This document shows positions 13,232 through 42,867 of a stretch of 64,000 bases of DNA, piece after piece. Both the position numbers and the translations under genes were made by a program. The notes beneath the pieces were generated by a model that saw only the letters and a list, made by a program, of their open reading frames with translations, ran no database searches and was not told where the DNA came from. The stretch lies in IMG/VR virus record IMGVR_UViG_3300044731_002337, positions 230,774 through 294,773 of that record. One strand, 5' to 3'. The number at the start of each line of letters is the position of its first letter. Positions within the stretch are counted from its first letter, which is position 1.

Positions 13232-14407
13232 ATGATAGTAGGATATACGACGGGGACTTTTGATTACCTGCATGAAGGACATATTCGTATTTTACGCGGT
13301 ATGAGAAAGTTGTGTGATCGTCTGATAGTAGGATTGACCACTGATGAATTGGCGGTGAAGCAAAAGAGGGCAACTATCATGTCATTTGATCATCGTCGGG
13401 TATTGTTGGAGAGTTGTAAGTGGGTATCTCATGTAGTGGAGCATCATGGGGAGTCTAAAATTGTAGCGTATGAAAAGTTACGGTTTCATAAATTATTTAT
13501 TGGGGATGATTATTTTGGATCTCGAGAGTATCTTGAGGTTAATGAAAAGTATCCTGAAGTAGAGATTGTGGTGATTCCAAGGACTTCCAATGTGTGTACA
13601 TCGCAGTTATGGGAGAGTTTAAATAAACGTGTGTTACATGACATGAGTATTATGCATATGGGTGTAGGATCAAGTGTCATTCGTCGCATTGGTGAACGTT
13701 TGGTGACCAAGACAATTAATTTAGGGTACACTGAAGTCTATGGTGAGCGAACAGCCAATGTATATCATTTTCCTATTCCTGTACCTCGTAATTGGGCCAG
13801 AGTGAATACTCCAGCAGTACATCCAAATTATCCTGGAGTGAATGGATTCCGGGAGATTGATGGAGGTGATATGTGGCATGGAAAGTCATGGTATCCTTAT
13901 GATGAGCATCGTGTCATTTATCAATCACCTCAAAAGTGGAGTTGTGTCTATCCTTTGGAGGAGAAGAAGCGTCCAAGTATGGTAGTGGAATTGATCGGTC
14001 GTTATGGTGGTGATACATTAGCACATTGGGTGGAATTCAAGTATCATCGTGATGAATTTCGAAGGTTGATTAAGCAAGTTTTAAGGATCATTATGGAGGA
14101 ATTGGCGCCTCAAGATTTTGTGCATGGTGATGTGCATTGTAGGAATGTGTTGGTGGATGGTCGTGGACAAGTCAGTTTAATTGATTTTGGGTGGTGCACG
14201 CATGGATCGTTTGTGATGCAGAGTGATGAACGTGAGGAGCATCAAAGTCGAGTGAAGGATTTATTTGATGTGATGCATTTTCGAGATAGTGTGGAAAAGT
14301 TATTGGTGGAGGAATTGGGATTAAGTTCGTTGTGGGGCGTTCATGCGACGGATTTTCTGACGTTTTCGAATGTACACAATGATGATAGGGAGCCACATGC
14401 AGAGTAG
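13232..14407 (+). CDS. cytidylyltransferase (TagD/ECT-like) fused to a kinase-like phosphotransferase domain
   Basis: GYTTGTFDYLHEGH (HxGH), LIVGLTTD, IGDDY, PRTSNVCTS; C-terminal FVHGDVHCRNVLV...LIDFGW. Confidence 0.85.
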   Translation: MIVGYTTGTFDYLHEGHIRILRGMRKLCDRLIVGLTTDELAVKQKRATIMSFDHRRVLLESCKWVSHVVEHHGESKIVAYEKLRFHKLFIGDDYFGSREYLEVNEKYPEVEIVVIPRTSNVCTSQLWESLNKRVLHDMSIMHMGVGSSVIRRIGERLVTKTINLGYTEVYGERTANVYHFPIPVPRNWARVNTPAVHPNYPGVNGFREIDGGDMWHGKSWYPYDEHRVIYQSPQKWSCVYPLEEKKRPSMVVELIGRYGGDTLAHWVEFKYHRDEFRRLIKQVLRIIMEELAPQDFVHGDVHCRNVLVDGRGQVSLIDFGWCTHGSFVMQSDEREEHQSRVKDLFDVMHFRDSVEKLLVEELGLSSLWGVHATDFLTFSNVHNDDREPHAE

Positions 14408-15682
14408 GAATGAGGAGGCAATTAATAAAATAACATGCCAGTTGCATAAACCTTGTTCGGGTATAGGTGTTGTGGTAATATAGGGTTCATTGGTCTTGGC
14501 TTCTTGATCTAAAGTAGGGGCCCATCGTTCGATAATGTCCCGTTGTTCTTTGGAGAAGTTTTGGTGGCCACATGTGATATGATGGGAGCCAGTGATGTAA
14601 TTGTTAGCACCTTGAACATTGATTAATTGTTGGCAGATATCCACTTTGCAGTCACGATCCATCATGCGTCGAAAGATAAATCCTTGTTCAAGACATTTGG
14701 GGCCAAAACAGATGACAGGTAATTCTGGGTTATTGATGAGTTTCTCTTCGCGTAGACAGGTACATGCTATATCATTGGGTGTAGTGGTGCAAAGGTTTGT
14801 GATATATGTTTCGCATTCAGATATGGGTAAATAAAAGGGGATATCTCCAATATACCATGGTTCACGACGGACACAACTATCGTATTTATGTTGTTCTTCA
14901 GTCTTGTTGCAGGTGATGGTAATGGATTTGATGAATGAGAGGACTTTTTCCTTTTTCACATTGTAAATGTATGGGGTGCCAAAGGAAGGTGGAGCAAGAT
15001 AGACTGGTGTATTGGTGAGGTCGCTATCACGTTGAGGCAATAGAGGGTCGCCCATGAAAGGGTAATTTATGCTATTGGGAAAATATTCGACCACATCCTC
15101 TGAGGGCAGGTTTTCATAGGCGCCATCAACATTAACTCGTCTTTTCTGGTAGGTGTACTTGAGCCATTCTTCTTCAAAAAATGGGTTATCACCCGCGTTA
15201 AAGAGTACGGTACCATTTAACGTAATGGAGCGTGTAGTGATTGTCTCGACATACCGAATAGGGTAAGATTTACTGTCACTAAACCTAAATAATATTTCCC
15301 TATCATTCACTTGTATATTGGCTGAATAGATAAACATGTCGAATGCCGCCTGATGTTCTGATTTGGGTACAATGGCTTTGGTAATCGTCACCGTATAGTG
15401 TTGAGGAACTATGATGGACCTAATTGGATTGAATAGATCTATATGTGCAACAAAGTGGCGACCATGGCGCAATTCAAATACGCTATGAGATGTGTTAGCG
15501 ATGTTAGAGTTACGTTGTAGTGAATTATTATCATAGTTGAATAGAACAGAATTAGTGGTTTCTTGAAAATCAACACTCGAAGACATGGACCATTTCATAC
15601 CATTACAATCAGGACCACTAAAAAAGAAAGGCTGTGGAATAGTAGAAGGTACATAATTCTTAAGAAATTTATAACAATCCAT
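14321..15682 (-). CDS. poxvirus A16/G9/J5-like Cys-rich membrane protein
   Basis: CETYITNLC...ACTCL...ICFGPKC...DCKVDICQQLIN...ITCG followed by a C-terminal TM. Confidence 0.7.
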   Translation of the reverse strand: MDCYKFLKNYVPSTIPQPFFFSGPDCNGMKWSMSSSVDFQETTNSVLFNYDNNSLQRNSNIANTSHSVFELRHGRHFVAHIDLFNPIRSIIVPQHYTVTITKAIVPKSEHQAAFDMFIYSANIQVNDREILFRFSDSKSYPIRYVETITTRSITLNGTVLFNAGDNPFFEEEWLKYTYQKRRVNVDGAYENLPSEDVVEYFPNSINYPFMGDPLLPQRDSDLTNTPVYLAPPSFGTPYIYNVKKEKVLSFIKSITITCNKTEEQHKYDSCVRREPWYIGDIPFYLPISECETYITNLCTTTPNDIACTCLREEKLINNPELPVICFGPKCLEQGFIFRRMMDRDCKVDICQQLINVQGANNYITGSHHITCGHQNFSKEQRDIIERWAPTLDQEAKTNEPYITTTPIPEQGLCNWHVILLIASSFLLCMWLPIIIVYIRKRQKIRRMNAPQRT

Positions 15683-15730
15683 TATTATCTTTTTCTTTTT
15701 GTATTGTGAGAGCGTAATAAAAGACTAGTT

Positions 15731-18700
15731 TTATTTTGGAAAAGGTGTTTTGGGTCGTGATGGTTGTGGAATAACAGGAGGAGGAGGAGGAGGAGGTGAT
15801 GTATTGAGTAAGGCTTTGATGGCACGTACAGTATTATACCACATCGGTTGATCTTGTTCATAGAAAGGTTGTGTTTTAATGTAATCTTGATACTCTTGTA
15901 AACGTGTAGCAAGTTCAACAAAACGAAGAGTGAGTAATGGTTTCTGTGGGTTATTCAAATCTCTCATGATGGCATTAGGTAAGGCTGAAATAGGTTTACC
16001 TTGTAGTTTGAATGTGATGAAATAGATGGTGTAGAAGCTGAGTAATAGGGGAGATAGATTGAATTTGGGGCAGGTAATAACATTGCGAGCTTCTAAAAGT
16101 TGATCCCCTTCAATTTTGGAGCCATTGATCCATTCCACAGTGATACCTTCGCCGAAAGCTGTACTCAAGGCGGCATCCAAGGCATCATTGCTGAATATGT
16201 CCATGCCTAATTTACCAAGGAGATCAACGCGATAGAGTTTCTTGGTTTGGGGTTCATAGATGAGAATGTTGGTATGTTTGGCGTAAGTAGAGGCGCTACT
16301 GACTTTCAAGAAAGCTATGCAGAATTGTTTGGTACTGGATTTCATATGGGCGATGAACTGTTCATGACGGTGACCAAGTGAAGTACCATTCCATACCATG
16401 AAGAATTCCAGATTATTGGTAGGAATAGCTACATCAACACTATGTACCTTGTCAAGTAAAGTTCGAAGAATACTATAGAGAGTAATAAGCATAAATTGAT
16501 TGTTACCTGAAAAGCCTTCATGAAGTCGTTTCATAGTATCACAAATGGTTTGAAGTTCTTTTGGTGTATATTCACGTTTGATTTGCATTTCTGTTTGATT
16601 GAATTCTAGGATTTGACGGTCAATGCCTGAGAAAACGGATGACATACTTGAGATATCAAACATGCCAGCCACGGTATCTGCTGTATCATAGTAACGGAAC
16701 GCTCCATTTGATCCTTCATGAAGTAGGATGAGGTCTGAGGAGATAACTTCTTCTTTATTGGTGGCATGCCATTTGATTTTATAGGTATCATTTTGCACAT
16801 CTTTGGATAGGATGACGGCTTGATTGCCCTGATCACCAATGACATCGTTAACATTGAATGCGGGGACGACAGCTTTGTGGGGTACGAGAACGGGGAAACT
16901 ATCTTCAGGTTTCATGGGGAAAGCCATTCCTTCATAGTAGATGACGTTATGACGATTGATACGGCGGTGTACTTTGAAAGGAATTTGGATATTGTTGCGA
17001 TCTAAATGTTTATTACCTTCATAATCTACGGCATTTCGTTTGGCAATGTTAAAGACGACACGACATAGATTTTCGCCTTTGCATCGTTCAAGATGTAATG
17101 TCTCTCGATGAACTTTTTCAAAAATGAATTGGCCATCACTGGAGGTGGAGCATAAGAGGACGATGCGGGTCATGGCGCCGAATCCATGATAGAATTTTTG
17201 GTTCTTGGATTTACACATGCGGGCAATACGACTTGAAGTTTGTTCAAATTCAGTGCGGGTACGACATGGTTCAATCATATACAATATAGGCACATCATAC
17301 AAATCAATACCTTCACGATTGTTGGCATCATAGATAAATAATTTGATTCGTTCACCATGAGGATTTAGTTTTGTATCATTGAAATTGTCACGAATACCTT
17401 TAGCCCGTGGATCCTCTGGTGCTTCATTTTCTTCCTCTTCTTGTTCTTCTTGTATTGCTGCTGCCTTCCTATTCTTCTTATTCTTAGGGGCGGCGGCAGG
17501 AGCTGCTTTTTTATTATTGTTTTTGGGGGCAGGATCCTTTTGTAGAGATGAGATATATACGAATGAGATTTTGGTGGGGTCAGGTGAAGCGGATAGATCA
17601 TTTGTCATATCTTGAAACCATTCAGGGAAACAATGGAGAGCCCATACAATCATTTCGGAACCATATAAATCCTTTGCTGCATCAGAGGTAGTATTACAAG
17701 TAAGAGAATATTTTTGGTTGGGATTTTTTTGATGCTCTTTACGAATATGGGTCATGAATTGGTATACGACAGGACAAAACATTTCAATCCAATGTTGTTT
17801 GGGTACATCATAATTTGGCCTATTCGTTATATTATCTGCACGTTTACCAATGATATTGGCTTCACCATACACAACACCATCTTTAACTTCCTGTTTCTTC
17901 CTTCCAGCTCCCCCCTTCTTTGGTTTGGCTGGTACTTCTCCTTCTACTTCTTCTTGTACTTGTTGTTTCTTATTCTTTCTGGGTTTCCTTTCTGGTTTGG
18001 GTTTAGTTACTATTACTTCATCTTCTACTTCATCTTCTGGTACTTGTTGTTTCTTATTCTTTCTTGGTTTCCTTTCTGGTTTGGGTTTAGGTACTGATTG
18101 TTTCAAGTCTACATTCTTGTTATTCTTCCTTGTTTGAAGTTTGTAATTTTTGGCATGAGCGATGGGTGGTTCATCAAGGAGTAGAGGAGGTTGATGTAGT
18201 GCGAGCCCCATTTCTTCATGTGTAAGTTGGAATGGGTTAACGATACCTTGACGTAATTGTTTGGTGAGTTGTTCATCTGTCTTCTTACTGTAAGTACGTG
18301 TAACGCCATCATAATTGAAGAAATCGAGTGAATCTTTACGGTGAAGAATTTCCTCATTGGTGATCTGGGTATCTGTCTTGTATTGGGAATAAATGGTCTC
18401 TCGAAGACGCTTGATGGATTCAGGGGTAGCATCAAATCGGGTGCGTGAGAATTCGGCGTACCAGCGTTCAATGACATCTTGGTGTGGTAGGTGATTAGAC
18501 GAATCATACATCATGGAGAGTTGGAAAAAGCGTTGGTAGATATCTTCATGATCAACACCCTGAGCTTGTAATGTCTTGACGTGATGGAGAATCTGTTGAT
18601 AGTGAATTTGGAAAAGGGGAACACTAATGACTTCTGAAATGACTTTTTGGGCAAACTTGGTTGGATCTTTATTTGCTGGAGCATAGGTAGTGTTATGATC

Positions 18701-21127
18701 TAAGGCGCGTTCAAGCTTCAATAATGATTCAGGGGTTAATTGGTATGTATCTTTATTGATGTAGTCGTCCCATTTGTGATCACGAACGAGTGGGAGGCGA
18801 TTTTGTGGTTCTCTATGGAGTAAGTTTACGATCCAAAATAAGTCATTAGGGTCATTGTTCATAATGGTGGCAGAGACAGGGAAAAACCGGAAATCAATAT
18901 CTTGACCGGCAAAGATAGTGCTATTGTTGGTGAGTCTTTGCTGATATGCCTGGTAAAGGACATAGGCTAACAAGTCACGCCCACGTATCTTATCATCATC
19001 AATAAAACGGTATTTGATGTAATCGGGACCGTAAATATCCTGTTGTGTGAAACCTGGATGTTCAAAGATTTCGTGCCATGGACTTTTATCGCTTCGACTT
19101 AGGATGTTGTGTGCCTCATCAATGACAAGACATAGTTTACCTGTAATCTTTTTGGCCTTGGTTTGGGCAGCTTGTGTAATGTGTCGATTGGGGAGTTTTA
19201 ATTTGGCGGCTAGAGCATTCACGATTTCCTTGTATACACTGGTATCCGTCTTGGTTAAGCCAATGCCATATGTTTTCTTCAAATCTGCAAATACATTCTG
19301 ATTGTTAGCGTCGGTCATACGTGCAATTTCCTTGTCACGTAACTGGTTGGCTTCTTCTTCCGTTTTACCGTTACTGAGGGCATTGGTACGAACTAGGTCT
19401 AGCTTTTTGCGAGCAGCAACAGAGCACATATCTTTGATGTAGCCTTCCCAGAGTTGAGTGCGTGATTGGGAGTTGGGGGTGACCCAGATAAGTTCGTATT
19501 GATGGTGTTGGAAATTGTTGCTGATGAGATTGGTGACTTTACATGTTTTGCCGGCGCCAGTGGAATCCATGATGAGTAAGCCAGCCGATTCAGAGGTGCG
19601 ATCATATTGGTTGATGACTTCATATTGATGAGGTTCGAATTTAAACCATTTACCTTCCCATGAACATTTCATTTCGGTAAGATTTTTAGAATCAATGGCT
19701 TCTTTAGGTTTCACAAAATCAATATCTGCCTCCTTCTTATCATATCCAAAGGCTTGGTCGATCACATAGTTGGTATCGTGGTATTCCAACTTATAAATGG
19801 CAAATACCCAAGATGGAGATTTACGATCATGTTTCTCATAAGGAATAATGCTTCGACTAAGTTTAGGTTTCAATCGAGCAAATTGAGTTTCATCCATGAT
19901 TACTGCGACTTGGCCGGTATTGTCATCAATCGCTACGTATTTGGCCCGGGCATGTCTAGCCATAGCAACACCCCTTTTGAATCGTTCCACATTTGATAAG
20001 CCCCGTAGTTCCATACGATCCGCATATTTTTCAATCGATATGGTAGAGCGAATTTGGCCACCCAAGTAGTAGTGAAATTCGGTAGCGTGAGGTAAATGTG
20101 CTAATGCATTATCTGCTTTTGCCTTGACATGAAATACTTGGGCATCTGAAACGTTGATGTAGCTATCCGTTTCATATAATCGGTTTTGAAAATACAATAA
20201 TGGTTCAGCGAAATACCCTTGAAATATCTCGTGTTGCGAGTTGGTAAATACTTCAGCGGGTGCAAAATGTTTTAAAGCTGGGTTTTGTTTGGGTTGTGCA
20301 ATGGCGTGAGCTTTGGCAAGTTCTTCGTCTGTGGGAATTTCCATGAGTGGGCCGGGAAGAGGTAATGGTCGTAAAGGTGCTGGTGGTGGTGGTATAGCTT
20401 GTGATGCCGCCTCATTAGGTAAAGGTACCGATTTAGGTCCAAACAACTTTGCAAAAAATCCACGACCCTTCTTCTTCTTTTGACCTAATGTATCTGATTT
20501 CGGTCGAACTGCATTCATCTGTGGAGAAGGTATCACTTCTGTCTTGGGTAATACATTAGGTTTCACGGCTGGTAAAGGCGAAGGTATTACTTCTGTTTTG
20601 GGCAATACATTAGGCTTCACGGATGGTAAAGGAGTTTCTGCTTTGGTGACTGAGGAATAAGATACAAGCTTAGGTTGCTGTGGTGGTGGTGGTGGATTCT
20701 CTAATTGAGTTGATGAGGAGGAATAAGCTACAAGTTTAGTTGGTTTTTGTGGTGGTGGATTTTCTAATTGGGTTGATGAGGAGGAATAAGATACAAGTTT
20801 AGGTTGCTGCGGTGGTTTTTGTTGTGGTGGATTTTCTAATTGGGTTGATGAGGAAACAGAAGATGCATAAGGAACAAGTTTATTTAATGGAGCTTGGGGA
20901 ATAGGCAAGGTAGGATTTGTTGGAGCCATTGTTTGCATTTTGTTGAGTTGGGGACCTTTAGTTCTTCTTCCTTCTTCTTCTTCTCTTTCTAATGGTGGGG
21001 TTATTACTTCATTGGATGGTAAAGGTAAAGGTGCTACAGGTGGTTGTGGTGGTGGTCGTGGTGGTTTTGTGGTCACCTTGGGTTTCATTCCAGCCAGTAA
21101 TTGGGGTTTATAATTTTGTTGCAACAT
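15731..21127 (-). CDS. giant multidomain SF2 helicase (D6/D11-like) with Pro-rich N-terminus, Tudor-like and peptidase-like C-terminal domains
   Basis: GLLIMDSTGAGKT, LVIDEAHN, VSAT, REGIDLYDV, EQTSSRIARMC. Confidence 0.8.
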   Translation of the reverse strand: MLQQNYKPQLLAGMKPKVTTKPPRPPPQPPVAPLPLPSNEVITPPLEREEEEGRRTKGPQLNKMQTMAPTNPTLPIPQAPLNKLVPYASSVSSSTQLENPPQQKPPQQPKLVSYSSSSTQLENPPPQKPTKLVAYSSSSTQLENPPPPPQQPKLVSYSSVTKAETPLPSVKPNVLPKTEVIPSPLPAVKPNVLPKTEVIPSPQMNAVRPKSDTLGQKKKKGRGFFAKLFGPKSVPLPNEAASQAIPPPPAPLRPLPLPGPLMEIPTDEELAKAHAIAQPKQNPALKHFAPAEVFTNSQHEIFQGYFAEPLLYFQNRLYETDSYINVSDAQVFHVKAKADNALAHLPHATEFHYYLGGQIRSTISIEKYADRMELRGLSNVERFKRGVAMARHARAKYVAIDDNTGQVAVIMDETQFARLKPKLSRSIIPYEKHDRKSPSWVFAIYKLEYHDTNYVIDQAFGYDKKEADIDFVKPKEAIDSKNLTEMKCSWEGKWFKFEPHQYEVINQYDRTSESAGLLIMDSTGAGKTCKVTNLISNNFQHHQYELIWVTPNSQSRTQLWEGYIKDMCSVAARKKLDLVRTNALSNGKTEEEANQLRDKEIARMTDANNQNVFADLKKTYGIGLTKTDTSVYKEIVNALAAKLKLPNRHITQAAQTKAKKITGKLCLVIDEAHNILSRSDKSPWHEIFEHPGFTQQDIYGPDYIKYRFIDDDKIRGRDLLAYVLYQAYQQRLTNNSTIFAGQDIDFRFFPVSATIMNNDPNDLFWIVNLLHREPQNRLPLVRDHKWDDYINKDTYQLTPESLLKLERALDHNTTYAPANKDPTKFAQKVISEVISVPLFQIHYQQILHHVKTLQAQGVDHEDIYQRFFQLSMMYDSSNHLPHQDVIERWYAEFSRTRFDATPESIKRLRETIYSQYKTDTQITNEEILHRKDSLDFFNYDGVTRTYSKKTDEQLTKQLRQGIVNPFQLTHEEMGLALHQPPLLLDEPPIAHAKNYKLQTRKNNKNVDLKQSVPKPKPERKPRKNKKQQVPEDEVEDEVIVTKPKPERKPRKNKKQQVQEEVEGEVPAKPKKGGAGRKKQEVKDGVVYGEANIIGKRADNITNRPNYDVPKQHWIEMFCPVVYQFMTHIRKEHQKNPNQKYSLTCNTTSDAAKDLYGSEMIVWALHCFPEWFQDMTNDLSASPDPTKISFVYISSLQKDPAPKNNNKKAAPAAAPKNKKNRKAAAIQEEQEEEENEAPEDPRAKGIRDNFNDTKLNPHGERIKLFIYDANNREGIDLYDVPILYMIEPCRTRTEFEQTSSRIARMCKSKNQKFYHGFGAMTRIVLLCSTSSDGQFIFEKVHRETLHLERCKGENLCRVVFNIAKRNAVDYEGNKHLDRNNIQIPFKVHRRINRHNVIYYEGMAFPMKPEDSFPVLVPHKAVVPAFNVNDVIGDQGNQAVILSKDVQNDTYKIKWHATNKEEVISSDLILLHEGSNGAFRYYDTADTVAGMFDISSMSSVFSGIDRQILEFNQTEMQIKREYTPKELQTICDTMKRLHEGFSGNNQFMLITLYSILRTLLDKVHSVDVAIPTNNLEFFMVWNGTSLGHRHEQFIAHMKSSTKQFCIAFLKVSSASTYAKHTNILIYEPQTKKLYRVDLLGKLGMDIFSNDALDAALSTAFGEGITVEWINGSKIEGDQLLEARNVITCPKFNLSPLLLSFYTIYFITFKLQGKPISALPNAIMRDLNNPQKPLLTLRFVELATRLQEYQDYIKTQPFYEQDQPMWYNTVRAIKALLNTSPPPPPPPVIPQPSRPKTPFPK
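17950..18095 (-). repeat. in-frame duplication KPKPERKPRKNKKQQV x2
   Basis: Two near-identical copies of ttgttgtttcttattctttctNggtttcctttctggtttgggtttag. Confidence 0.9.
20525..20880 (-). repeat. in-frame repeats (VKPNVLPKTEVIPSP x2; KLVxY..SSSTQLENPP x3)
   Basis: Visible tandem peptide and DNA repeats in the helicase N-terminus. Confidence 0.85.
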
Positions 21128-21153
21128 CTTTCCTTCCTTTTTTTGTTTTTTTT

Positions 21154-23353: not shown

Positions 23354-23374
23354 ATCCAAATAAAAAATGAGGAA

Positions 23375-23989
23375 TTATGGCATGGCAGTAGTGGTTTGAT
23401 AAATGACATGTCCTGAGAAGATGAGTGGAGATGTAGTGATTGTAGTGGAAGGTGTAACAATTTGACATGTCATGGTATCGCACCATTGAGTATTGGGGAG
23501 TGTAGCGAATAGACGAACACTTACTGTAGGAACACCAGAGATATCACATGATCCAATTAAGGGGGTCATATGTGGGGCATAGATGCGTACGGGTAGAGTC
23601 ACATTGAATGTAATGGACGTAACATTTGTGAGGGGGGCATCTCGACATGTGATGATGAATAAAAACCGTAGATCGATGAATTCACCATAAGGTTTACCTA
23701 AGAATTGGGAGTTAGTGGTATCAATCGCGATATTGGAGATAGGGGCAGCATTGACTAATAAATTAAAGGTTGTATTTGTGATGGATGAATATTGCCAAAT
23801 TTCTTCTGTTTGTTGTAAGTCTATCGCTTGAATGATGGGGGAGTTGCGTAACGCGAGCATCACCTCTGCTTGAATATGATCATTGATGCTGGGGAATGTA
23901 TTAGGGAACCCTATGAGGATTACGCACAAGGTAGCAGCTCCCAAGGCAATAAATAGTGTAAAGAGTAGGAGTGAAGTTTGCCACTTCAT
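23375..23989 (-). CDS. type II membrane protein with beta-sandwich (RBP-head-like) C-terminus
   Basis: N-terminal TM; KPYGEFIDLRF...NVTLPV...FSGHVIYQT pattern shared with 57301-58020. Confidence 0.55.
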   Translation of the reverse strand: MKWQTSLLLFTLFIALGAATLCVILIGFPNTFPSINDHIQAEVMLALRNSPIIQAIDLQQTEEIWQYSSITNTTFNLLVNAAPISNIAIDTTNSQFLGKPYGEFIDLRFLFIITCRDAPLTNVTSITFNVTLPVRIYAPHMTPLIGSCDISGVPTVSVRLFATLPNTQWCDTMTCQIVTPSTTITTSPLIFSGHVIYQTTTAMP

Positions 23990-25959
23990 GATGTTTTTTT
24001 ATCTTGATAGTGTCGAAATTGTAATTTTTCAAGTTTTAGTCGATGTTGTCTTCTCATGTACCAATAAACTAATAAGGCAAAAATAGCAATACCCATAGCA
24101 ATAAAGGAAGTGATGCCTAACAATGTCATATCCCACATACCAGGTCCAGTACTGACTTGAGGTGCATTTTTGGTGATGGAAATGGATCCTGAATTTGGTT
24201 TCACACTTAAAATGGTACTATTGGTATTCGTTTGACTGGTACATATGACATTGGAAGTACTATTTAGATTAATAGCTGATCCATCAATATCAATCTTTTG
24301 TTCGCATACATTTTGGTTACATCGAAGTTCTTTTTGTAGTCTAGTTTTGTAGACATTGGATCGTGCATCATTACAAGAGTTGATTAAGCAATGGAGAGAG
24401 AGTGCGGTGGAATCTTGAAACATGTCTTGTAGCGCTTGGGCTTGAGTTACACAGGTACAAGCAGTCTTCAATCGATCATCAATATTCCTTTTGCAATACG
24501 AAATCATATGTTCATCACATAATGGTGATCCATGATAGTAGGCTTTAAGAGAGATATTGTCAATAGTAACATCCCACATTCCAGCACATAGCATGGCTTT
24601 TTCATAGTCCCATCCAAAGTTGTGGTTTTTGAATGCGATGTTGACTTCAGCGATGGTTCCTTCAATGCGCCAGGGTTTAGGGCAGGAGCAGCCTTCGATA
24701 CCGGGGTGTGTATCGTGGACGGCGGCGAATATGGTAGTGCGAAACATGATGTGGGCTAAATAATGATATAGACTATTTGGTACACAATCACATGGACTTG
24801 TTGTACTTATGGTTGCGGGATCTTCAACATTTTGACCAAGACCTGCACATTCATTGAGAGCTGTTCTAGGGTCATTAATATCTTGTATATTATAAGTGAG
24901 TTTAGGGTAAGGATCGACCCATTTACCTCGACGATAGATAGCACACACACGATCAAAAAGGTAGTCAGCTCCACCAGGTGTAGTACCGTTTGTGGCGTTT
25001 TGCCAGTCACTATAGAGCATCAAGTCACCTACAAAATTTCGACTACCCCAAGGATTACTATTAATGGTATCACCCCAGATCAAAGTAGTGCCGGGTGTAT
25101 AATTGTTAGAGTTGGATGGTCCATTCATGAAGTAGCTGTCTAATTGTTGGTAACGATCACCTGTAGTGCTTGTGCAAATAGTAAGGGGATTCAAGTTTTG
25201 AGTAAAATCTTTTTTCAATGCATCTGTACTATATTTCAAGAGTTGAGAGAGGGCGCCTTGAGCTGGAGTGAGCGCTTTTCTTCCCGTACTATTGTATTCA
25301 TTCACCATGTAACCTGTTTGTCTATAATATTTATTGTTATCGCTATACATTTTGGTCATTTCATCGCATCGACGGCCATTTTGGTAATAGATGCTCACTG
25401 AAGGTAAAAAGGGGGAGCCACAAGAGACAATACTCCGGTTCATTTTCGATTTGAATTGGTAGAGAGAGTCAACATTACCTGCTGCAATAGTGGAAGGATC
25501 ATTGTTTATGGTATTCGTACGACCAAACTCTGTACTATCATAATCAGAACATGCACTAATACCATCTGAGAAATGATTCCATACTAATGGTTTATCATTT
25601 AGATTAGAATAGACGCCTCCTTCTACCCATACTTGACCACGTTCAGTTACTCGTGTAGCTATATCCTCATCCCATTTCGCTTTGAACCCTACTTTCATGT
25701 TTGAAGGAATAATCATACTTTGGATCAAGGGTAAAGGGCAGTTTTGGGTGTCTGCCCATTGATTATTGGAGCACCAAATTGACTTGGGATTGAAATAACC
25801 CATTCCCACATGACGTGTTGTAGGCGTCCATTGTGACCCATTTCCAGGGCAATCTACATCACGAAAGAATTGGGGTAAAGTAGGAACACCTTGTTCATAA
25901 GAAAGAATCATGGGTAGAATGGAGCGTTGACATGGTGATGGTTTCGTATCTTTAGACAT
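23986..25959 (-). CDS. poxvirus A16/G9/J5-like Cys-rich membrane protein (large)
   Basis: CDEHMISYC...ACTCV...HCLINSC...YKT...CNQNVCEQKIDI...VICT plus C-terminal TM. Confidence 0.72.
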   Translation of the reverse strand: MSKDTKPSPCQRSILPMILSYEQGVPTLPQFFRDVDCPGNGSQWTPTTRHVGMGYFNPKSIWCSNNQWADTQNCPLPLIQSMIIPSNMKVGFKAKWDEDIATRVTERGQVWVEGGVYSNLNDKPLVWNHFSDGISACSDYDSTEFGRTNTINNDPSTIAAGNVDSLYQFKSKMNRSIVSCGSPFLPSVSIYYQNGRRCDEMTKMYSDNNKYYRQTGYMVNEYNSTGRKALTPAQGALSQLLKYSTDALKKDFTQNLNPLTICTSTTGDRYQQLDSYFMNGPSNSNNYTPGTTLIWGDTINSNPWGSRNFVGDLMLYSDWQNATNGTTPGGADYLFDRVCAIYRRGKWVDPYPKLTYNIQDINDPRTALNECAGLGQNVEDPATISTTSPCDCVPNSLYHYLAHIMFRTTIFAAVHDTHPGIEGCSCPKPWRIEGTIAEVNIAFKNHNFGWDYEKAMLCAGMWDVTIDNISLKAYYHGSPLCDEHMISYCKRNIDDRLKTACTCVTQAQALQDMFQDSTALSLHCLINSCNDARSNVYKTRLQKELRCNQNVCEQKIDIDGSAINLNSTSNVICTSQTNTNSTILSVKPNSGSISITKNAPQVSTGPGMWDMTLLGITSFIAMGIAIFALLVYWYMRRQHRLKLEKLQFRHYQDKKTS

Positions 25960-29640: not shown

Positions 29641-30708
29641 ATGGCATTGATACTTGCGGGGGCAGCAGCTGGAGCGGGTGTAATAGGTGGATTGTTTGGA
29701 GGTGGAGGTACCTATTTGACTATTAATAATCGTATCGTCAATGATATGACAGTTAGAGTGGCTATGGAATCAAGTACCTCTTGTATCTCACAGCTGGAAG
29801 GTTCTGAAACATTTAGTATTGATAGTAGTAAAACTTCTTATTATGAGTTAACAGGGCCAGATAGTACATGTGTATTGTGTCAGAATGTATTGAGTACTGT
29901 ATTGGCAGATCGTCAGAATTTAGAGACCACGTTGCAAATTATGGGGGTACCTTTTCAAACCATCAATCCAGATTTCGTCAGAGACTATAACAATAATGAA
30001 TCCGATTTAAGTCCATGTGCACTCATGTGTAGAGATATTGTAGTGCAAGAGGTGTCACAAATTTCCAAATTTAGTTCGGATGTAAGTTGTCAAGTCTCCA
30101 CCACATCGAATACCGAGATTCAGCAATCGTTCAAGGCGAGTATTGAAAGTCATATGAAGAATCAACAGGATTTTTTTGGTAAAGTATTGGGTAGTTTATA
30201 TAAGTTGAAATCGAATATCACTACAGATTTGGCTAATGTCATGTCAGCTGCCATTTCAACCCGGTTACAACAGAATTTAGTGGCCGAGGCAAGAGTGTTA
30301 CAAGAGATAAGTATAGGTAATGCTGGAGGTAATTCTCATTCAGTGTATGTGAATAATGTGAAGCAATCATTTACATTGCAACAAGTAGGGACGATGAAGG
30401 TAGTGAATAATATTGTGGATCAATTGAAGCAAAGTGCACAGTTTAGTATTTTGCAGCAGTTGACAAATAAGAATGATACGATAGGTGGTTTATCAGAGGC
30501 TTTTGTTAAGTTTTTCAAAATTTGGAGCGTATTTATTAAGAATACAATTGGTCAATTGTTTGTGATATTTATTATGCTGCTCATCATTTTATTATTTTAT
30601 AAATCATATCAATATACCATGACCAGTGCAGCCATGCAAAAGAGAAACGAAAGGATTCACGATAAGATTAATGAAGATAAAGAAGCAGCACATAAGAATG
30701 AACTATAA
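29641..30708 (+). CDS. L1/F9-like virion membrane protein without N-terminal MG; Gly/Ala-rich leader
   Basis: Same Cys skeleton and C-terminal TM as 28483-29562; ATG follows an A-tract. Confidence 0.7.
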   Translation: MALILAGAAAGAGVIGGLFGGGGTYLTINNRIVNDMTVRVAMESSTSCISQLEGSETFSIDSSKTSYYELTGPDSTCVLCQNVLSTVLADRQNLETTLQIMGVPFQTINPDFVRDYNNNESDLSPCALMCRDIVVQEVSQISKFSSDVSCQVSTTSNTEIQQSFKASIESHMKNQQDFFGKVLGSLYKLKSNITTDLANVMSAAISTRLQQNLVAEARVLQEISIGNAGGNSHSVYVNNVKQSFTLQQVGTMKVVNNIVDQLKQSAQFSILQQLTNKNDTIGGLSEAFVKFFKIWSVFIKNTIGQLFVIFIMLLIILLFYKSYQYTMTSAAMQKRNERIHDKINEDKEAAHKNEL

Positions 30709-34748: not shown

Positions 34749-34780
34749 ATTGACAAGATGAAGAAAAAAAGTAAACAACT

Positions 34781-36340: not shown

Positions 36341-36997
36341 TTAGTATACTTGTTCAAGTTTGAAATGGGTGGTGATGAATTGTTGGTATGAGTTGATGGA
36401 GGTTTGAAATGATTCCAAGTCGGTTTGGTGTGGATGTTCAGTGATTTTGAATGCATTACAAAAGAGTTGGAGTTGATCGCGTGTATGGGTGAATTGGTGA
36501 ATAAATTGGAAAATAGAAGTACGCAAGTGAAGGATAACGTAGAGTTCTTCTTTTTGGGGTGTATGTTTTCCCTGAGGTAAGTGATCGACCATGGATTTCA
36601 ATTGAGTAAATTTATCATTCATCTGAGTCATGATATCTTGTAGAATGTGGTATTGTTCTTTTATGTAATTTGTAATGTGTTCTTGTGCTTTGGTGTCTAG
36701 TGGGATGGCTGGGAAGTTCTTGACGGATACATTTTTAATGGGTACTTTAGTAGCGATATAGGCTTCAACACGTTTTTGTTTGGTGTTACGTACCCAGACT
36801 GAAATGCAAATGTAGGCCAAGATGTTGAGTAATCCGGAGATGCCCGCCATAGTAGTATCTTTTTTGGACACTAGCGTCATGGTAACAATGAAAGAGGCGG
36901 AGAAAAGAGAGACGGCAATGATAACCCAAGGATCTAATAATTCACGTAATAGAGTAAATTGTTCTTTTAAGCGCATTTGTTCTTTTTCTTGGGGCAT
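36341..36997 (-). CDS. two-TM membrane protein with helical C-terminus
   Basis: Two hydrophobic helices followed by a coiled-coil-like region. Confidence 0.65.
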   Translation of the reverse strand: MPQEKEQMRLKEQFTLLRELLDPWVIIAVSLFSASFIVTMTLVSKKDTTMAGISGLLNILAYICISVWVRNTKQKRVEAYIATKVPIKNVSVKNFPAIPLDTKAQEHITNYIKEQYHILQDIMTQMNDKFTQLKSMVDHLPQGKHTPQKEELYVILHLRTSIFQFIHQFTHTRDQLQLFCNAFKITEHPHQTDLESFQTSINSYQQFITTHFKLEQVY

Positions 36998-37836: not shown

Positions 37837-37921
37837 TTTCTCTATCTTGCTTGAGAGTATTCCGATCTAAAATCACAAGAGGGAATAATTCAAACAAATA
37901 AACAAGAGAAAGAAAAAGGAA

Positions 37922-38617
37922 ATGTGGTCAGCGTTACCGGTTCGTTCGTCACAGAAGAGAAGAAGGGAAGTAGAGGAGTATCAAGCGCCTCCAAGGTTAC
38001 GTAATTGTCAAGTGGGAGATGAACAATTTACAGATGAAGATGGACGTATTGCATCGGAAGAAGAGGAGGAGGAAGAAGAGGAAGAAGAGGAGGAAGGATC
38101 TGATTCTTCTTATGTGGATGGGGAAGAAGATGACGAAGAAGAGGAGGAGGAAACGAGTGATTCGGAAGATGGGGATGAAGTGGAGGAGGAGGATGATGTG
38201 AATGAGTTATTGGTCGAGGCGAATAAGATTAAGGATAGGGTGGATGTGGAGACAAGGGGTAAAAGGGAAAGAGTTCGTCGTGAAGCATGGTTTCGTAAGG
38301 TAGTTAAAATATGGGAGGAATGGGAAGCGAGTAAGACGGAATTTAAGATTGTGAATCATAAGCCTCGTGGAACATTTTGGGGGAAGCATGAACCAGATTA
38401 TGCAATATGTGTACGTGGAGGTGGTAATGACTATTATGTATATATATTAGAATCGGGTGCCTTGCGATGTGAGTGTGAAGATTATGAAACGATGGAGATT
38501 CAAGAGATGGTACAGCACTTAAAAGAAAAACATCAACATGGCGTGTCAGCGTCTAGTACAAAAATATGTGGAGGAAACCAAACAGATGATGCCAGCGCTG
38601 AGTGCCTCCACAAGTGA
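37922..38617 (+). CDS. acidic (poly-Glu) hypothetical protein
   Basis: Long E/D tract followed by a globular region. Confidence 0.6.
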   Translation: MWSALPVRSSQKRRREVEEYQAPPRLRNCQVGDEQFTDEDGRIASEEEEEEEEEEEEEGSDSSYVDGEEDDEEEEEETSDSEDGDEVEEEDDVNELLVEANKIKDRVDVETRGKRERVRREAWFRKVVKIWEEWEASKTEFKIVNHKPRGTFWGKHEPDYAICVRGGGNDYYVYILESGALRCECEDYETMEIQEMVQHLKEKHQHGVSASSTKICGGNQTDDASAECLHK

Positions 38618-39248
38618 TAAAACAAATTGGTTATTAACTGAAAATTGGAAGTGTTATGTAGGTGGTACATCCTATGATATGAGTAATTGTCATAATGTAA
38701 ATGATGCAGAACCTGTATTCAAACTTCATCAATCTGGCTTCTTTTCATGGATCAATGAACGTGGAATGCAATGTATTAATCATATTACAGGAGTATTTAC
38801 TCAAGTGAAGGATAATAGTTCAGGTGGATATACGTATCAGCCACCATCAGCTACGAGTTCGGGTACATCACCTCATGAATGTTGGCAAGAATGTATGTAT
38901 GTCACAAGAGAAAAGAGTGCAACAGAGCCTTGTGTGAATTGTATTATGTTACAATTGAGTAGTAAACCAAGTTTATGTGTCCCTTCGATTACGAGGGAGA
39001 TGATGACGGATACGATTGAGTGTCAGATGATGTTGATACCAGAGTTATTAACGGAGGAGGCGGAGATTGATTTTCCTCAAGTGTGGCATATATTGCAAAC
39101 GGATTCACTTAAGAGTGGTGGATTGGATACGACTACTTTGATTCTTATTATTGTCTTTTCCATTGTGGGGGCTTTGATTACTTATATTCTATTTGACCGT
39201 TACTGGTTTCATGCATCATTGGCGACATTGAGTAAAAAAGATTCATAA
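38538..39248 (+). CDS. Cys-rich protein with C-terminal TM (probable virion membrane protein)
   Basis: Multiple Cys including CxxC and CxxxC; C-terminal TM LILIIVFSIVGALITYILF. Confidence 0.65.
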   Translation: MACQRLVQKYVEETKQMMPALSASTSDKTNWLLTENWKCYVGGTSYDMSNCHNVNDAEPVFKLHQSGFFSWINERGMQCINHITGVFTQVKDNSSGGYTYQPPSATSSGTSPHECWQECMYVTREKSATEPCVNCIMLQLSSKPSLCVPSITREMMTDTIECQMMLIPELLTEEAEIDFPQVWHILQTDSLKSGGLDTTTLILIIVFSIVGALITYILFDRYWFHASLATLSKKDS

Positions 39249-39985
39249 CCGAGTACATAAGTTGTATTGATGGATTGATAATGAATGTAACATGGCATAC
39301 TTACAATACATGGTTTGACTGTTTTCTTTGGAGTGGATGGTTGTTGTTGTTCATGGAGCCGTATCATGAGGTATCGATGTTTATCTTCTTGTATCATGGG
39401 GAAAAAGGGTATAGTTTCTTGTAGGTGGGGGAATTGCATCATGTAAGGTGTACCATGAGTGATAGTGAGTTGTCGAAAGGGTGAAGGTAGATGTGGTGGT
39501 AGAACAGGTGGATTCATGGGGATAGTCGCCGTAATGGTGGGTAAAGGTGGAGTATGTAAAGGATTATGAGGAATAATCTTGTGTTGTGTATACGGCCATT
39601 GAGGTTCATGTTTGATCATATAGTCAATGTAGAGTGACATGAACATGGTGAGTAATGGTTTAGAGTTGCCACAACGAAAGGAAAAAATGCTGCGATTATC
39701 ACGGGAGACATCAAATAGCTTTTCGATGGAGCAATGATGGTGGAGCAAGTAGAAGGTGAGATGTTGGTATAATAAGTTGGGGTCACATTTTTGGAAGCGT
39801 TGAATATCATGGGGTGTTAATTGGTAGCGATGCCAATAAGTAGGTAGCATGCATGGTGTAGGTGTAAAAGAAATGGAAAGAGTGAATTGGGCACGAGCAC
39901 GTGGTGTGACAATATGATGTTGTCGATAATGACGTTTACCTTCTTCCAACTCATAATGTAAAATAATAGTCTCTGGTATATCCAT
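39209..39985 (-). CDS. hypothetical protein
   Basis: ORF tiles the gene map. Confidence 0.6.
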   Translation of the reverse strand: MDIPETIILHYELEEGKRHYRQHHIVTPRARAQFTLSISFTPTPCMLPTYWHRYQLTPHDIQRFQKCDPNLLYQHLTFYLLHHHCSIEKLFDVSRDNRSIFSFRCGNSKPLLTMFMSLYIDYMIKHEPQWPYTQHKIIPHNPLHTPPLPTITATIPMNPPVLPPHLPSPFRQLTITHGTPYMMQFPHLQETIPFFPMIQEDKHRYLMIRLHEQQQPSTPKKTVKPCIVSMPCYIHYQSINTTYVLGYESFLLNVANDA

Positions 39986-40003
39986 TTTATTTGTTTGTTT
40001 GGA

Positions 40004-41068
40004 TTAATTCGACTCCTCTTCATCTAAACACAATTCCTTTTCCCATTCATTCATGAGTTGAGATATCTCATCATTTGCATGACCTGAAAATAGACTTGAT
40101 TCTTGCATAACTTTTTGCATAGACGCATCATCCCCATCTTTCATAGCTTCCATCACACGCTGAATTTCATGGCTATTCTCAGACCACAAGTATTTCTTCA
40201 CTGTATCTTGAAGCTCTGTATCTGAAAGCCATACAGTCTTCAATAATTCGATATGATTCGCAGGTAACCATTTCAAACAATCATCATAATTTTGAGTCGA
40301 AAAGGCTTGATATACATACACGCGTGACTTGTGATCTGGTAAGCTGATAGGTGAAGAGGAAGAAGAAGAAGAAGAAGAATTGGTATTTGTCTTTTTAACC
40401 CAATCATCCCAAGGATCAGGTACATTGGATTGTATGGCGGAGAGAACATATTGGATGGATTCAAAGATGAAGGCGACTTTCGATTCCCCTTGTTTCATGA
40501 GTCGTTTGAATAGCCGTTGAAATTCCTTGTTATGTTGTAGACAATTCCTAACGTGTCCCATGAGATCACCAGCAGAAATGCTTTGATTATCCTTGAGAAG
40601 AATGGTGAGAATTTTACGTACCTCTGGAATATTATTATAAATGGAATTCATAATGGATAGACGATAAATATCAACAAAGATATTCCAAAAAATTCCTTTG
40701 CTGGTATGATCAAATAAACTATAACGGTATACGAAATCATAACCTGGTGCATCAAAAATCATGGCAAAGATATCAATGCCTTCATTGTAAGTGAAAAATT
40801 GTACATCTCGAGCGAGTAATAAATTGGAGGCATCTTTACAGCTGGCAAAGAAACGTGTACATGCAACACTGGTCGTAGGATCTGCTTGAATGATCTTATA
40901 CCATTTCTGATAAGCCTCATTTGCAATCTCTAATTGTTCTTGTGCTTTCACATCTTCCTCAAAGTCGGGTGCTTGTAATCCCTTGTTTTGAGCTAAGATA
41001 AATTCAAGAAAGTTTTTATTGAAATTGACTTCAAGGTTGGAAATGCAATTATCGAGTGAGCTTGTCAT
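40004..41068 (-). CDS. hypothetical alpha-helical protein
   Basis: 354-aa ORF with an upstream A-rich leader. Confidence 0.7.
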   Translation of the reverse strand: MTSSLDNCISNLEVNFNKNFLEFILAQNKGLQAPDFEEDVKAQEQLEIANEAYQKWYKIIQADPTTSVACTRFFASCKDASNLLLARDVQFFTYNEGIDIFAMIFDAPGYDFVYRYSLFDHTSKGIFWNIFVDIYRLSIMNSIYNNIPEVRKILTILLKDNQSISAGDLMGHVRNCLQHNKEFQRLFKRLMKQGESKVAFIFESIQYVLSAIQSNVPDPWDDWVKKTNTNSSSSSSSSSPISLPDHKSRVYVYQAFSTQNYDDCLKWLPANHIELLKTVWLSDTELQDTVKKYLWSENSHEIQRVMEAMKDGDDASMQKVMQESSLFSGHANDEISQLMNEWEKELCLDEEESN

Positions 41069-41104
41069 GTCCTGTCCTCTTCTTTTTCTATTTCCTTTTA
41101 TTTT

Positions 41105-42235
41105 TTATTTCTTCATTTCCATTTTTTTTTGTGTTTGACAAGCACATACTTGCGAATAATAACGTGGTAGAATGACCCATACAAGAATACCCCAAAGCAA
41201 TAGTAAACCAATAACTAATAGTGTCATCCATGTATAACTAGCATGCCATCCAGAGAATACATGATTGGTGACAGTAGGTGAAATATGTCGTGTTAGTAGT
41301 ACTGAAGGTGTCCATTCTAAATCGACCTGTATTGGATAATGATCTGAAAGGGTATTTTCTATGGTCCAGGTATGATGTAATAATCCAATGGGAGTTTGAT
41401 AAGGTGGAACTTGGGGAATGATAATGGTTTGTGATAGATGTATGGGTTGGAACTCATTGGTGAGTAAAAGGGCATAATCAATCCATTCTTGTGGACAGCA
41501 AGGACATTGATGCATAGACCAATATTCATCAACACATCCATGAGGGTATTGAGCATTGGTATAATATTCAATATTATCTAACCCTACTAAAGGATTTTTA
41601 GTTGGATCCATGGTAAATTCTTGGGTTGATGATGATGATGATGATGATAAGGGTATATTGGTAGCTTGAAGGATTTGTAAGACATGTTGATTTTGGGAAT
41701 TGGGAATATTAAAGTCGCCAATAATCAATGTAGGCTCATGGGGAGGAATATGATGCTGATCAATAAAGTGATGCAATTGTTGGAGCTGTTCAAGACGAAT
41801 CGAATGGGCAGTTGGAGTTTGCCATGCATGCAAATGTGTCATAAATAGATGAACTGAAGTAGATGAATGAACATCCAATTGTACATACAACATATTCTTA
41901 TCTGCTAAACAATCTGAGCCTTCACAATCAGTACGATAAGAAATATCATTGGTCGCAAGAATAGGGTGTTTACTATATACGGTAATACCAGCACGAACAA
42001 TGTTGATATTGATACGTTGTTCGGTAAAGTGTGAGAAGCCTAAAGAGATCAAGGTTTTACGAAGTTCTAATTCTAAATGAATGGGGATAAGTTCTGCAAA
42101 CATGAATACGTCAACCTCATGATGGTAAGAGGTAATCCATTTGGCAATTTGGGTGAGACGTTCTTCTTGGGCGATAAAACGTAAAGGTTTGGGAACTGGC
42201 ATCATGACATTGAGGAATACAATACGTAATTTCAT
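41105..42235 (-). CDS. EEP-family phosphodiesterase, sphingomyelinase C-like, with C-terminal TM
   Basis: FLNV, FAEL, YSKHPI, DCLADK, THLHA, GDFNI, WIDY, LSDHYPI, then a TM. Confidence 0.82.
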   Translation of the reverse strand: MKLRIVFLNVMMPVPKPLRFIAQEERLTQIAKWITSYHHEVDVFMFAELIPIHLELELRKTLISLGFSHFTEQRININIVRAGITVYSKHPILATNDISYRTDCEGSDCLADKNMLYVQLDVHSSTSVHLFMTHLHAWQTPTAHSIRLEQLQQLHHFIDQHHIPPHEPTLIIGDFNIPNSQNQHVLQILQATNIPLSSSSSSSTQEFTMDPTKNPLVGLDNIEYYTNAQYPHGCVDEYWSMHQCPCCPQEWIDYALLLTNEFQPIHLSQTIIIPQVPPYQTPIGLLHHTWTIENTLSDHYPIQVDLEWTPSVLLTRHISPTVTNHVFSGWHASYTWMTLLVIGLLLLWGILVWVILPRYYSQVCACQTQKKMEMKK

Positions 42236-42306
42236 AATGGATTATGTTCTTCTTTTTTTTTTCATGAGTTCAAGTGAAAAACAAGGGGGGTAATGGTAAT
42301 ATAAAA

Positions 42307-42867
42307 ATGGCATGTGATGAAATATTGCGCGTGATAAAGGGGAATATGAAAAAGGTGGATTTATTACCACGTATGTATAGTGAAGTGGATTGTCAAGGGG
42401 ATATGATAAGTGTATGTCATGGACGTCATTCTATTCCATTCCCTATCAAATCCATGATTGTACCTATTACGTGTACATTGCAGTTTGTGGATTCAGAACA
42501 TCGATGGGATTCAGAGTATGATCATGAGTTACATGGAGAAATGATTCGTGATGTGGAAGAAGTTATTGAACAATGGTATAATGAGGCCAGAACAAGGAAA
42601 TTTTATCAGAGTTGGTCTGAAGCGGATGTAGTGATGGTTGAAAAGGATAAAGTCATGTCCTATTATGATCAAGTGAAAAAGAAATGTCAAGAAACCAAGG
42701 ATGATGAATGGTGTCAATATGTGACGGGTGATGATAATGAATATAAGGGTTCATTTTGGGAATGGATTGTTGTCATGATGTGTTTACTCGTCATTATTAT
42801 AATTTTTTGGTACCTATGGAATAAAAAAATAGATGAGCAGCAACAATTACGGGAAACAATACATTAA
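42307..42867 (+). CDS. small Cys-containing membrane protein related to the A16/G9/J5-like paralogs
   Basis: PRMYSEVDCQG...PIKSMIVP shared with 14321-15682 and 23986-25959; C-terminal TM. Confidence 0.65.
   Translation: MACDEILRVIKGNMKKVDLLPRMYSEVDCQGDMISVCHGRHSIPFPIKSMIVPITCTLQFVDSEHRWDSEYDHELHGEMIRDVEEVIEQWYNEARTRKFYQSWSEADVVMVEKDKVMSYYDQVKKKCQETKDDEWCQYVTGDDNEYKGSFWEWIVVMMCLLVIIIIFWYLWNKKIDEQQQLRETIH

Follow-up and report, generated by a model that had tools for sequence, protein, structure and literature searches.

What does a shared N-terminal motif represent in membrane proteins that otherwise recall the poxvirus fusion proteins A16, G9 and J5? The question is raised by the last 64 kb of the linear 294,773-bp virus record IMGVR_UViG_3300044731_002337 from IMG/VR (CheckV completeness estimate 55%), a stretch referred to below as the window. 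Three of its open reading frames (ORFs), here P0001, P0002 and P0003, begin with the same split motif, in which an earlier reading of the letters alone (the sequence-only reading) saw a likeness to a β/γ-crystallin Greek key and possibly a Ca2+- or glycan-binding head grafted onto fusion proteins. Our analysis indicates that the motif is probably the signature of a conserved N-terminal module, composed of a helix started by a cysteine and a crystallin-like double Greek key, which forms the membrane-distal head of C-tail-anchored giant-virus proteins of the A16/G9/J5 family and may contain a disulfide and take part in assembly.

The split motif in three membrane proteins

All six motif peptides quoted in the sequence-only reading were located by an exact string check (Table 1), and of the 559 ATG-started ORFs of at least 60 amino acids (aa) in the entire record P0001, P0002 and P0003 are the only ones to contain both halves. 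None of 300 shuffles gave any ORF with both halves, and about 1e-9 such ORFs are expected from composition; since the pattern was written post hoc, conservation is a stronger argument than either figure, and it is on conservation that a chance origin was rejected. The motif is indeed kept in metagenome orthologues of 40–55% identity, across which the C of its 'DC-x-G' element is invariant but the D and the G vary. A further conserved element had escaped the sequence-only reading, namely a cysteine that lies 15–25 residues upstream of the motif and starts the N-terminal helix. Across ten N-termini from the three families, the invariant positions are Cys3, Pro18, Cys26, Ile87, Ser89 and Pro93 (P0001 numbering throughout).

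Pairwise similarity among the three N-termini is weak in BLASTP (E 0.01–0.4), and hhalign aligns each half on its own but not the two together (E 2e-4 to 2e-2), since the insert that separates the halves is of variable length, 15 to 58 residues. At the opposite end, P0001, P0002 and P0003 each close with a hydrophobic stretch that has basic residues after it, which identifies them as C-tail-anchored membrane proteins. Scans of IMG/VR returned one related contig for the P0001 and P0002 families and none for P0003; the P0001 orthologues share 44–51% identity.

Conservation of the head across the family

A profile of the three families was searched against 1.84 billion representative proteins and recovered 356 relatives at E<=1e-3, including 202 at E<=1e-10; the ten that were looked up belong to metagenome collections only and carry uninformative names. 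Column conservation was counted over an alignment of 127 relatives. The conserved columns comprise the two cysteines, Cys3 (124/127) and Cys26 (125/127), and the prolines Pro93 (125/127), Pro32 (117/127), Pro16 (108/127) and Pro18 (103/127), accompanied by aromatic residues at positions 21 (121/127) and 31 (106/127), Ser89 (106/127), Gly/Asn95 (90/127), Asn/Asp25 (89/127) and Gly28 (85/127). In conservation, this N-terminal core comes close to the cysteines in the C-terminal domain, and both motif halves together with the J5-like cysteine pattern were found by a strict regular expression in 88 of 133 full-length representatives.

Conservation of this extent across relatives marks the motif as a family-wide domain signature and not something acquired by this virus alone. 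The suggestion that the head had been grafted onto fusion proteins is therefore not upheld, since almost all members of the wider giant-virus family have the head and its core residues are kept in 106–125 of 127 sequences, and a local graft was rejected as an explanation.

Predicted structure of the N-terminal module

The AlphaFold2 model of P0001 (pLDDT, for predicted local distance difference test, 71) places the motif in the first of two Greek keys, which comprises a helix at residues 4–9 with Cys3, a strand at 19–21 (FFF), the Cys26-x-Gly28 hairpin, a strand at 89–91 in the Ser89 ... Pro93 segment and a strand at 96–106. Residues 40–82 form a variable insert of low confidence, and the rest of residues 1–106 has pLDDT 87–92. 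A β-rich insertion, whose strands at 121–200 have pLDDT 54–83, sits within the second Greek key, which is closed by a long hairpin (strand 238–258, pLDDT 74–93). In P0003, for which 78 N-termini were used in modelling, the order of elements is as in P0001, and residues 1–61 have pLDDT 81–94.

A Foldseek search of the PDB with the P0003 model revealed crystallin domains in all of the top 50 matches (probability 0.96–1.0, template modelling score, TM, ~0.6 by target). Crystallin-family entries were likewise returned from the AlphaFold DB clusters, and ESM Atlas yielded clusters with the Crystall, Inhibitor_I36 and Crystall_3 families, plus one Nucleocytoviricota cluster. For the P0001 and P0003 models alike, crystallins were the only strong matches in the PDB, AlphaFold DB and ESM Atlas; the alignments cover nearly the entire 82–100-residue crystallin domain at a root-mean-square deviation of 2.2–3.3 Å, and on the P0001 model they begin at residues 3–18 and end at residues 257–265. 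The entire 453-residue P0001 model gave no significant Foldseek match in the PDB or Swiss-Prot, because a multidomain model hides small domains; the difficulty was overcome by running VIA-align on every chain and by using the model of P0003, which has a single domain. An ESM Atlas feature search with P0001 residues 1–270 returned scores below 0.8, i.e., noise. On the predicted structures, the head is a wedge-shaped β sandwich of two Greek keys.

The Nucleocytoviricota cluster in ESM Atlas comprises 130 proteins of ~131 aa that have the same predicted fold with an N-terminal helix (TM 0.48 by match). As judged from these models, they may be head-only relatives of P0003.

In crystallins, the a–b hairpin carries the signature Y/F/W-x4-Y/F-x-G, and the d strand of the Greek key has a conserved serine. 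The family consensus keeps this spacing, with aromatic21 at i, Cys26 at i+5 and Gly28 at i+7, the second signature aromatic being a cysteine in nearly all relatives. Ser89 occupies the place of the d-strand serine, and a second such serine is present in the closing hairpin of P0001, within FIKSITI. The i, i+5, i+7 spacing and Ser89 explain the crystallin resemblance noticed earlier. The first half of the motif would thus correspond to the first a–b hairpin, aromatic(i)-x4-Cys(i+5)-x-Gly(i+7) with Cys for the second aromatic, and the 'I-x-S-x-I-V-P' half to the Ser-bearing d strand, with the strand after Pro93 opening the second Greek key. The crystallin-type Greek-key fold suggested by the sequence-only reading is accordingly borne out on the models of P0001 and P0003 and by the signature spacing.

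Several observations weigh against this interpretation. The crystallin Pfam profiles (PF00030, Crystall_3 and Inhibitor_I36) match none of 78 N-domains at E<=1, sequence and family-profile searches of the PDB returned only transmembrane noise and clostrillin at E 0.32, and Pfam searches with P0001, P0002, P0003 and the neighbouring proteins left the motif region without a match. The fold is a prediction and not a solved structure; the P0001 and P0003 models share the N-terminal part of their alignments; and the second Greek key of P0003 has a pLDDT of only 50–74. The N-terminus of P0002 aligns in register with that of P0001 in the 127-sequence alignment, and it is from this alignment that P0002 is suggested to share the fold. 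On the side of family membership, PF03003 (Pox_G9-A16, 24-bit cut-off) matches none of P0001, P0002 and P0003 at E<=1.

The moderate confidence of the second P0003 key, together with the poor P0001 model held by ESM Atlas itself (pLDDT 0.37), could mean that the crystallin match is a modelling artefact, with another small β structure in its place or with the N-terminal Cys and hydrophobic motif acting as a lipidation or membrane-targeting signal that replaces the 'MG' of A16/G9. The family N-termini would suit such a signal, as they begin M-x(0-5)-C, with an MG start in only 8 of 145 relatives. We regard this explanation as very unlikely, however, since the same fold emerged from two proteins with very different inserts, crystallins alone were returned from four libraries, the spacing of the crystallin signature is kept, and Cys3 and Cys26 are co-conserved, which fits a pair. 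An N-terminal MG myristoylation site is absent from P0001, P0002 and P0003, whose starts read MDC, MSK and MAC, so vaccinia-type N-myristoylation is not expected.

The J5-like domain and family membership

In vaccinia virus (VACV), the eight cysteines of J5 are spaced 9-2-20-5-18-5-20, and the J5-like domain follows the pattern C-x9-C-x-C ... C-x4-C ... C-x4-C ... C with disulfides 1-2, 3-5, 4-6 and 7-8 (PMC10100723). The PXXCW motif and a disulfide-closed Delta motif are further features of A16/G9/J5 (PMC12802840). In P0001, Cys 298, 307, 309, 325, 330, 345, 350 and 371 give the spacing 9-2-16-5-15-5-21, P-V-I-C-F replaces PXXCW and C350...C371 forms a Delta-like segment; in P0002, the spacing from Cys489 to Cys573 is 12-2-21-5-18-5-21, and L-S-L-H-C-L, with neither Pro nor Trp, stands at the PXXCW position. 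The cysteine-rich C-terminal domains of P0001 and P0002 match each other in BLASTP at E 3e-6.

PF03003 has no match in the whole record at E<=10, and it matches 14 of 86 relatives at E<=0.01 (best E 4.8e-6). For profile comparison, orthopoxvirus A16 genes were retrieved from IMG/VR with a probe peptide. With hhalign, the family aligned to the orthopoxvirus A16 alignment at E 1.2e-4 over 143 columns, pairing CDxFM...C, LPVxCF with GPRVCW (the PXXCW motif) and the closing C-x4-C...C with the A16 Delta motif; for P0001 itself, P-V-I-C-F aligned to A16 P-R-V-C-W and C350...C371 to the A16 Delta segment. The top structural match in BFVD, at E 1.4e-5, was a Homavirus protein; the fifth-ranked match, a weak one (E 0.02), carries the annotation G9/A16. 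The PF03003 matches among relatives, the hhalign result, the cysteine spacing and the BFVD matches together identify P0001 and P0002 as broad-sense giant-virus members of the A16/G9/J5 family (PMC10100723).

Of the three A16/G9/J5-like proteins announced by the sequence-only reading, P0001 and P0002 therefore stand and P0003 does not: the domain hidden Markov model (HMM) detects no J5-like cysteine-rich domain in it (E 8.9), and it has neither the PXXCW nor the Delta motif. P0003 as an equivalent of J5 was rejected for lack of this domain. The count of three also needs revision, as an HMM of the C-terminal cysteine-rich domain common to P0001 and P0002 revealed two further true paralogs outside the window, at genome positions 126555-127865(+) and 113195-114589(-) (E 2e-14 and 1.5e-11). 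By spacing and HMM, the eight-cysteine J5-like pattern is present in P0001, P0002 and both of these paralogs. Both additional paralogs have a degenerate N-terminal motif, which in one of them reads IIHSLYVPPGVRVTAY and is even more crystallin-like in look. The record thus holds four paralogs with head and J5-like domain (two inside the window and two outside), plus P0003 with head and anchor only. Outside poxviruses, A16/G9/J5-type genes are reported to be mostly single-copy, with four copies in medusavirus (PMC10100723).

Relation to the poxvirus A16 N-terminal domain

The sequence-only reading knew of no such domain in poxvirus A16/G9/J5, and our comparisons with orthopoxvirus A16 agree. When the orthopoxvirus A16 N-terminal domain was aligned to the family head with hhalign, the best local pairing, of family IrSmyIP with A16 CSSFIVPEF, was not significant (E 0.4, probability 0.15%), and the structural matches of the head models include no A16 or G9 chain. 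The DNA probe for C-S-S-F-I-V-P-E-F also matched an unrelated giant-virus metagenome ORF by chance, and this match was rejected.

The head might nonetheless be homologous, though diverged, to the N-terminal domain of A16 ('site B', the F-C...C-S-S-F-I-V-P region); it would then be no domain type of its own, and the A16 domain would be a degenerate crystallin. The retrieved orthopoxvirus A16 reads ...HCSSFIVPEFAKQYVLI..., which fits the family consensus S-[MLF]-[IY]-[IV]-P and is the region of the best local pairing; in addition, A16 Y46-x4-S-x-G53 has crystallin spacing, and the A16 N-terminal domain is an alpha/beta domain with ten strands and two disulfides (PMC9980159). We consider this homology doubtful, because the pairing falls short of significance and the two invariant cysteines of the family do not match the A16 cysteine positions. 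A wider and equally tentative proposal is that the ancestral fusion machinery of Nucleocytoviricota had the head with its cysteine pair as its membrane-distal module, with A16 'site B' (C-S-S-F-I-V-P) as a degenerate descendant; P0003-like proteins and those of the 131-aa ESM Atlas cluster might then constitute a new class of head-and-anchor subunits without a J5-like core, which would join by crystallin-type pairing.

Ligand binding and possible function of the head

The canonical crystallin Ca2+ motif, N/D-N/D-x-x-S/T-S, which Ca2+-binding microbial βγ-crystallins carry in each Greek key, is absent from P0001, P0002, P0003 and the family, so the Ca2+ binding envisaged by the sequence-only reading finds no support. 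The serine occurs in the contexts FNPIRS (P0001), PLPLIQS (P0002) and PFPIKS (P0003); across relatives, the residue before Ser89 is Q/G/R/K, with S in 9/127, and the upstream acidic/amide pair is missing. The heads would not be expected to bind Ca2+ through the canonical motif. A module for receptor recognition through Ca2+ or glycans would suit the membrane-distal tip, many microbial βγ-crystallins do bind Ca2+, and crystallin-like domains of adhesion proteins, e.g., DdCAD-1, are among the structural matches. The P0001 insertion also gave lectin-like Foldseek matches (galectin-, calreticulin- and ERGIC-53-like), yet these are weak and not significant (probability <=0.2, TM <0.2), and with the Ca2+ motif lacking in all three proteins and their family we judge a Ca2+- or glycan-binding role to be improbable.

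For the crystallin-like head as a structural module of the fusion machinery, we hypothesize that a Cys3–Cys26 disulfide could staple the N-terminal helix to the first hairpin, and that an Erv1/ALR oxidase could form it. Other nucleocytoplasmic viruses encode Erv1/ALR oxidases for a cytoplasmic disulfide pathway. An Erv1/ALR-type sulfhydryl oxidase is encoded in the record at genome positions 191781-192056(+) (PF04777, 44 bits), which fits virus-directed disulfide formation in cysteine-rich membrane proteins. Crystallin domains tend to pair, and the heads may mediate subunit pairing, assembly or regulation atop a multi-paralog fusion machine. The analogy is with what the N-terminal domains of A16/G9 do in vaccinia (PMC9980159, PMC12802840), where the J5-like domain forms the trimeric fusion core (PMC12802840). 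P0001, P0002 and P0003 would be proteins of the virion membrane and might act in entry or fusion.

Gene architecture and genomic context

The features of the locus are collected in Table 1.

Table 1. Motif halves, predicted domains and candidate genes in the window (window coordinates).
Feature	Position	Strand	Description	Basis
P0001	14321..15682	-	453 aa: N-terminal helix and crystallin-like domain, J5-like cysteine-rich domain, C-terminal anchor	
P0001 motif halves	15631-15599; 15424-15383	-	PFFFSGPDCNG; IRSIIVPQHYTVTI; ORF 14321-15682(-), 453 aa	Exact string check
P0001 residues 1-106	15365..15682	-	Predicted helix and first Greek key	AlphaFold2, column conservation
P0001 residues 107-237	14972..15364	-	β-rich insertion, ~130 residues, lower confidence	AlphaFold2
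P0001 residues 238-260	14903..14971	-	Predicted long hairpin closing the second Greek key; second Ser motif FIKSITI	
P0001 residues 262-371	14570..14899	-	J5-like domain, eight Cys	
P0001 residues 418-438	14369..14431	-	Predicted transmembrane segment	Hydropathy scan; model helix 414-448
P0002	23986..25959	-	657 aa, second A16/G9/J5-family paralog	
P0002 motif halves	25875-25843; 25725-25684	-	PQFFRDVDCPG; IQSMIIPSNMKVGF; ORF 23986-25959(-), 657 aa	Exact string check
P0002 residues 10-92	25684..25932	-	Putative Cys10 helix and first Greek-key motif (FFRDVDCPG ... IQSMIIPSNMKVGF)	
P0002 residues 481-573	24241..24519	-	J5-like domain	Domain HMM E 1.3e-59
P0002 residues 611-631	24067..24129	-	Predicted transmembrane segment	Hydropathy scan
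F9/L1-family candidate	29641..30708	+	Membrane protein, 355 aa from ATG, C-terminal anchor	Sub-threshold PF02442
P0003	42307..42867	+	186 aa from ATG 42307: N-terminal helix, complete crystallin-like domain, helical stalk, anchor	
P0003 motif halves	42367-42399; 42445-42486	+	PRMYSEVDCQG; IKSMIVPITCTLQF; ORF 42274/42307-42867(+)	Exact string check
P0003 residues 18-114	42358..42648	+	Predicted two-Greek-key crystallin-like domain; motif = first key, residues 21-61	
P0003 residues 150-170	42754..42816	+	Predicted transmembrane segment	AlphaFold2 model, hydropathy scan

Translation of P0002 probably starts at the first ATG, 25959, because the conserved Cys10 lies upstream of the start in the database entry, a 641-aa version that begins at the second Met and omits Cys10 and the helix (affected region 25912-25959(-)). 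An A-rich stretch directly 5' of 25959 resembles those at the other paralogs and also favours the first ATG. For P0003, position 42274 of the earlier ORF is an upstream GTG; the start MAC... agrees with the family, in which the Cys is usually within residues 2–6.

The F9/L1 candidate lies between the P0001/P0002 genes and P0003 and its match to PF02442 (L1R_F9L; E 1e-4) scores 19.7 bits, short of the cut-off at 27 bits. Proximity of the F9/L1 and A16/G9/J5 families has been reported (PMC10100723), and this weak candidate fits it.

Inspection of the 80 nt upstream revealed A-rich tracts directly before five starts, 15682(-), 25959(-) and 29641(+) in the window and genome positions 126555(+) and 114589(-), with AAAGAAAAAGATAATA-ATG and AATAAAAGAAAAAAAAAAGA-ATG as examples; P0003 (42307) has a shorter A/T-rich stretch. 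The tracts may represent a promoter or leader element that these genes have in common.

Next to P0001, the ORF 13232-14407(+) encodes a cytidylyltransferase-like domain (PF01467, E 6e-16) fused to a domain resembling kinases (matches to APH, ABC1 and Pkinase), and its 3' end overlaps that of P0001 convergently by 87 bp. On the other side, P0001 adjoins the 1798-aa ORF 15731-21127(-), which has a ResIII helicase-type match at residues 496–690 and is otherwise unannotated. The guanine–cytosine (GC) skew is strongly positive (0.12–0.37) from position 1 to ~52 kb and then negative (-0.11 to -0.28) to the end of the window.

Significance and previous descriptions

Full-text literature searches found no paper that uses 'crystallin' for A16, the entry-fusion complex or the homologues in Nucleocytoviricota and giant viruses; the matches in PMC12802840 and in a 2026 thraustochytrid-virus preprint are to the word 'crystalline'. 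The comparative study of the giant-virus homologues does not use the term and confines its structural comparison to the J5-like domain (PMC10100723), as does work on these homologues so far (PMC10100723, PMC12456145), and a study of G9 mutants, where it turns to them, takes up the P(R/Y)XCW motif alone. Within the literature searched, a known viral protein family thus appears to carry a previously unannotated, family-wide crystallin-like head of which we found no published description.

The A16/G9/J5 trimer is seen as the centre of a fourth type of viral fusion machine. The head would be a second, equally conserved domain at its exposed tip, one that mutagenesis, antibodies and structural studies could address in giant viruses that can be cultivated. 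Its fold can be recognised and its Cys-Cys-Ser-Pro signature is diagnostic, which could improve metagenome annotation where Pfam finds nothing, and it opens the question of the form of the ancestral complex and the origin of the poxvirus N-terminal domains. To the βγ-crystallin superfamily it would add a viral, membrane-anchored and possibly disulfide-modified branch.

Comparison with known systems

With βγ-crystallins such as clostrillin, the Protein S N-domain, spherulin 3a and the DdCAD-1 N-domain, the head shares the predicted wedge, the signature spacing and the serine. Unlike them, it has Cys for the second aromatic and, on an extra N-terminal helix, another invariant Cys, as well as Pro at +4 from the Ser, no Ca2+ motif and no detectable sequence-profile similarity; it accommodates inserts of 15–58 residues in the first key and, in P0001, ~130 residues in the second, and it is fused to a viral membrane-anchored protein.

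The vaccinia A16 N-terminal domain differs in its cysteines (C60/C90 and C70/C128; PMC9980159), is not significantly alignable to the head and is not among its structural matches; the vaccinia A16/G9 N-terminal domains, for their part, gave no crystallin-type match. Vaccinia A16 'site B' (PMC12802840) is nevertheless similar to the head in its position at the membrane-distal top, in being an aromatic-rich, disulfide-stabilised β region and in the string S-F-I-V-P.

Compared with poxvirus A16/G9 as whole proteins, the window proteins fall below the PF03003 threshold and have no MG start, and P0003 is without the J5-like domain. P0001 and P0002, in contrast, share with A16/G9/J5 the eight-cysteine helical J5-like domain, which across the family shows PxxC[W/F] and a C...C segment resembling Delta, though P0002 lacks both the Pro and the Trp of the former, and, like the poxvirus proteins, the window proteins have a C-terminal anchor, several paralogs and a candidate F9/L1 gene nearby.

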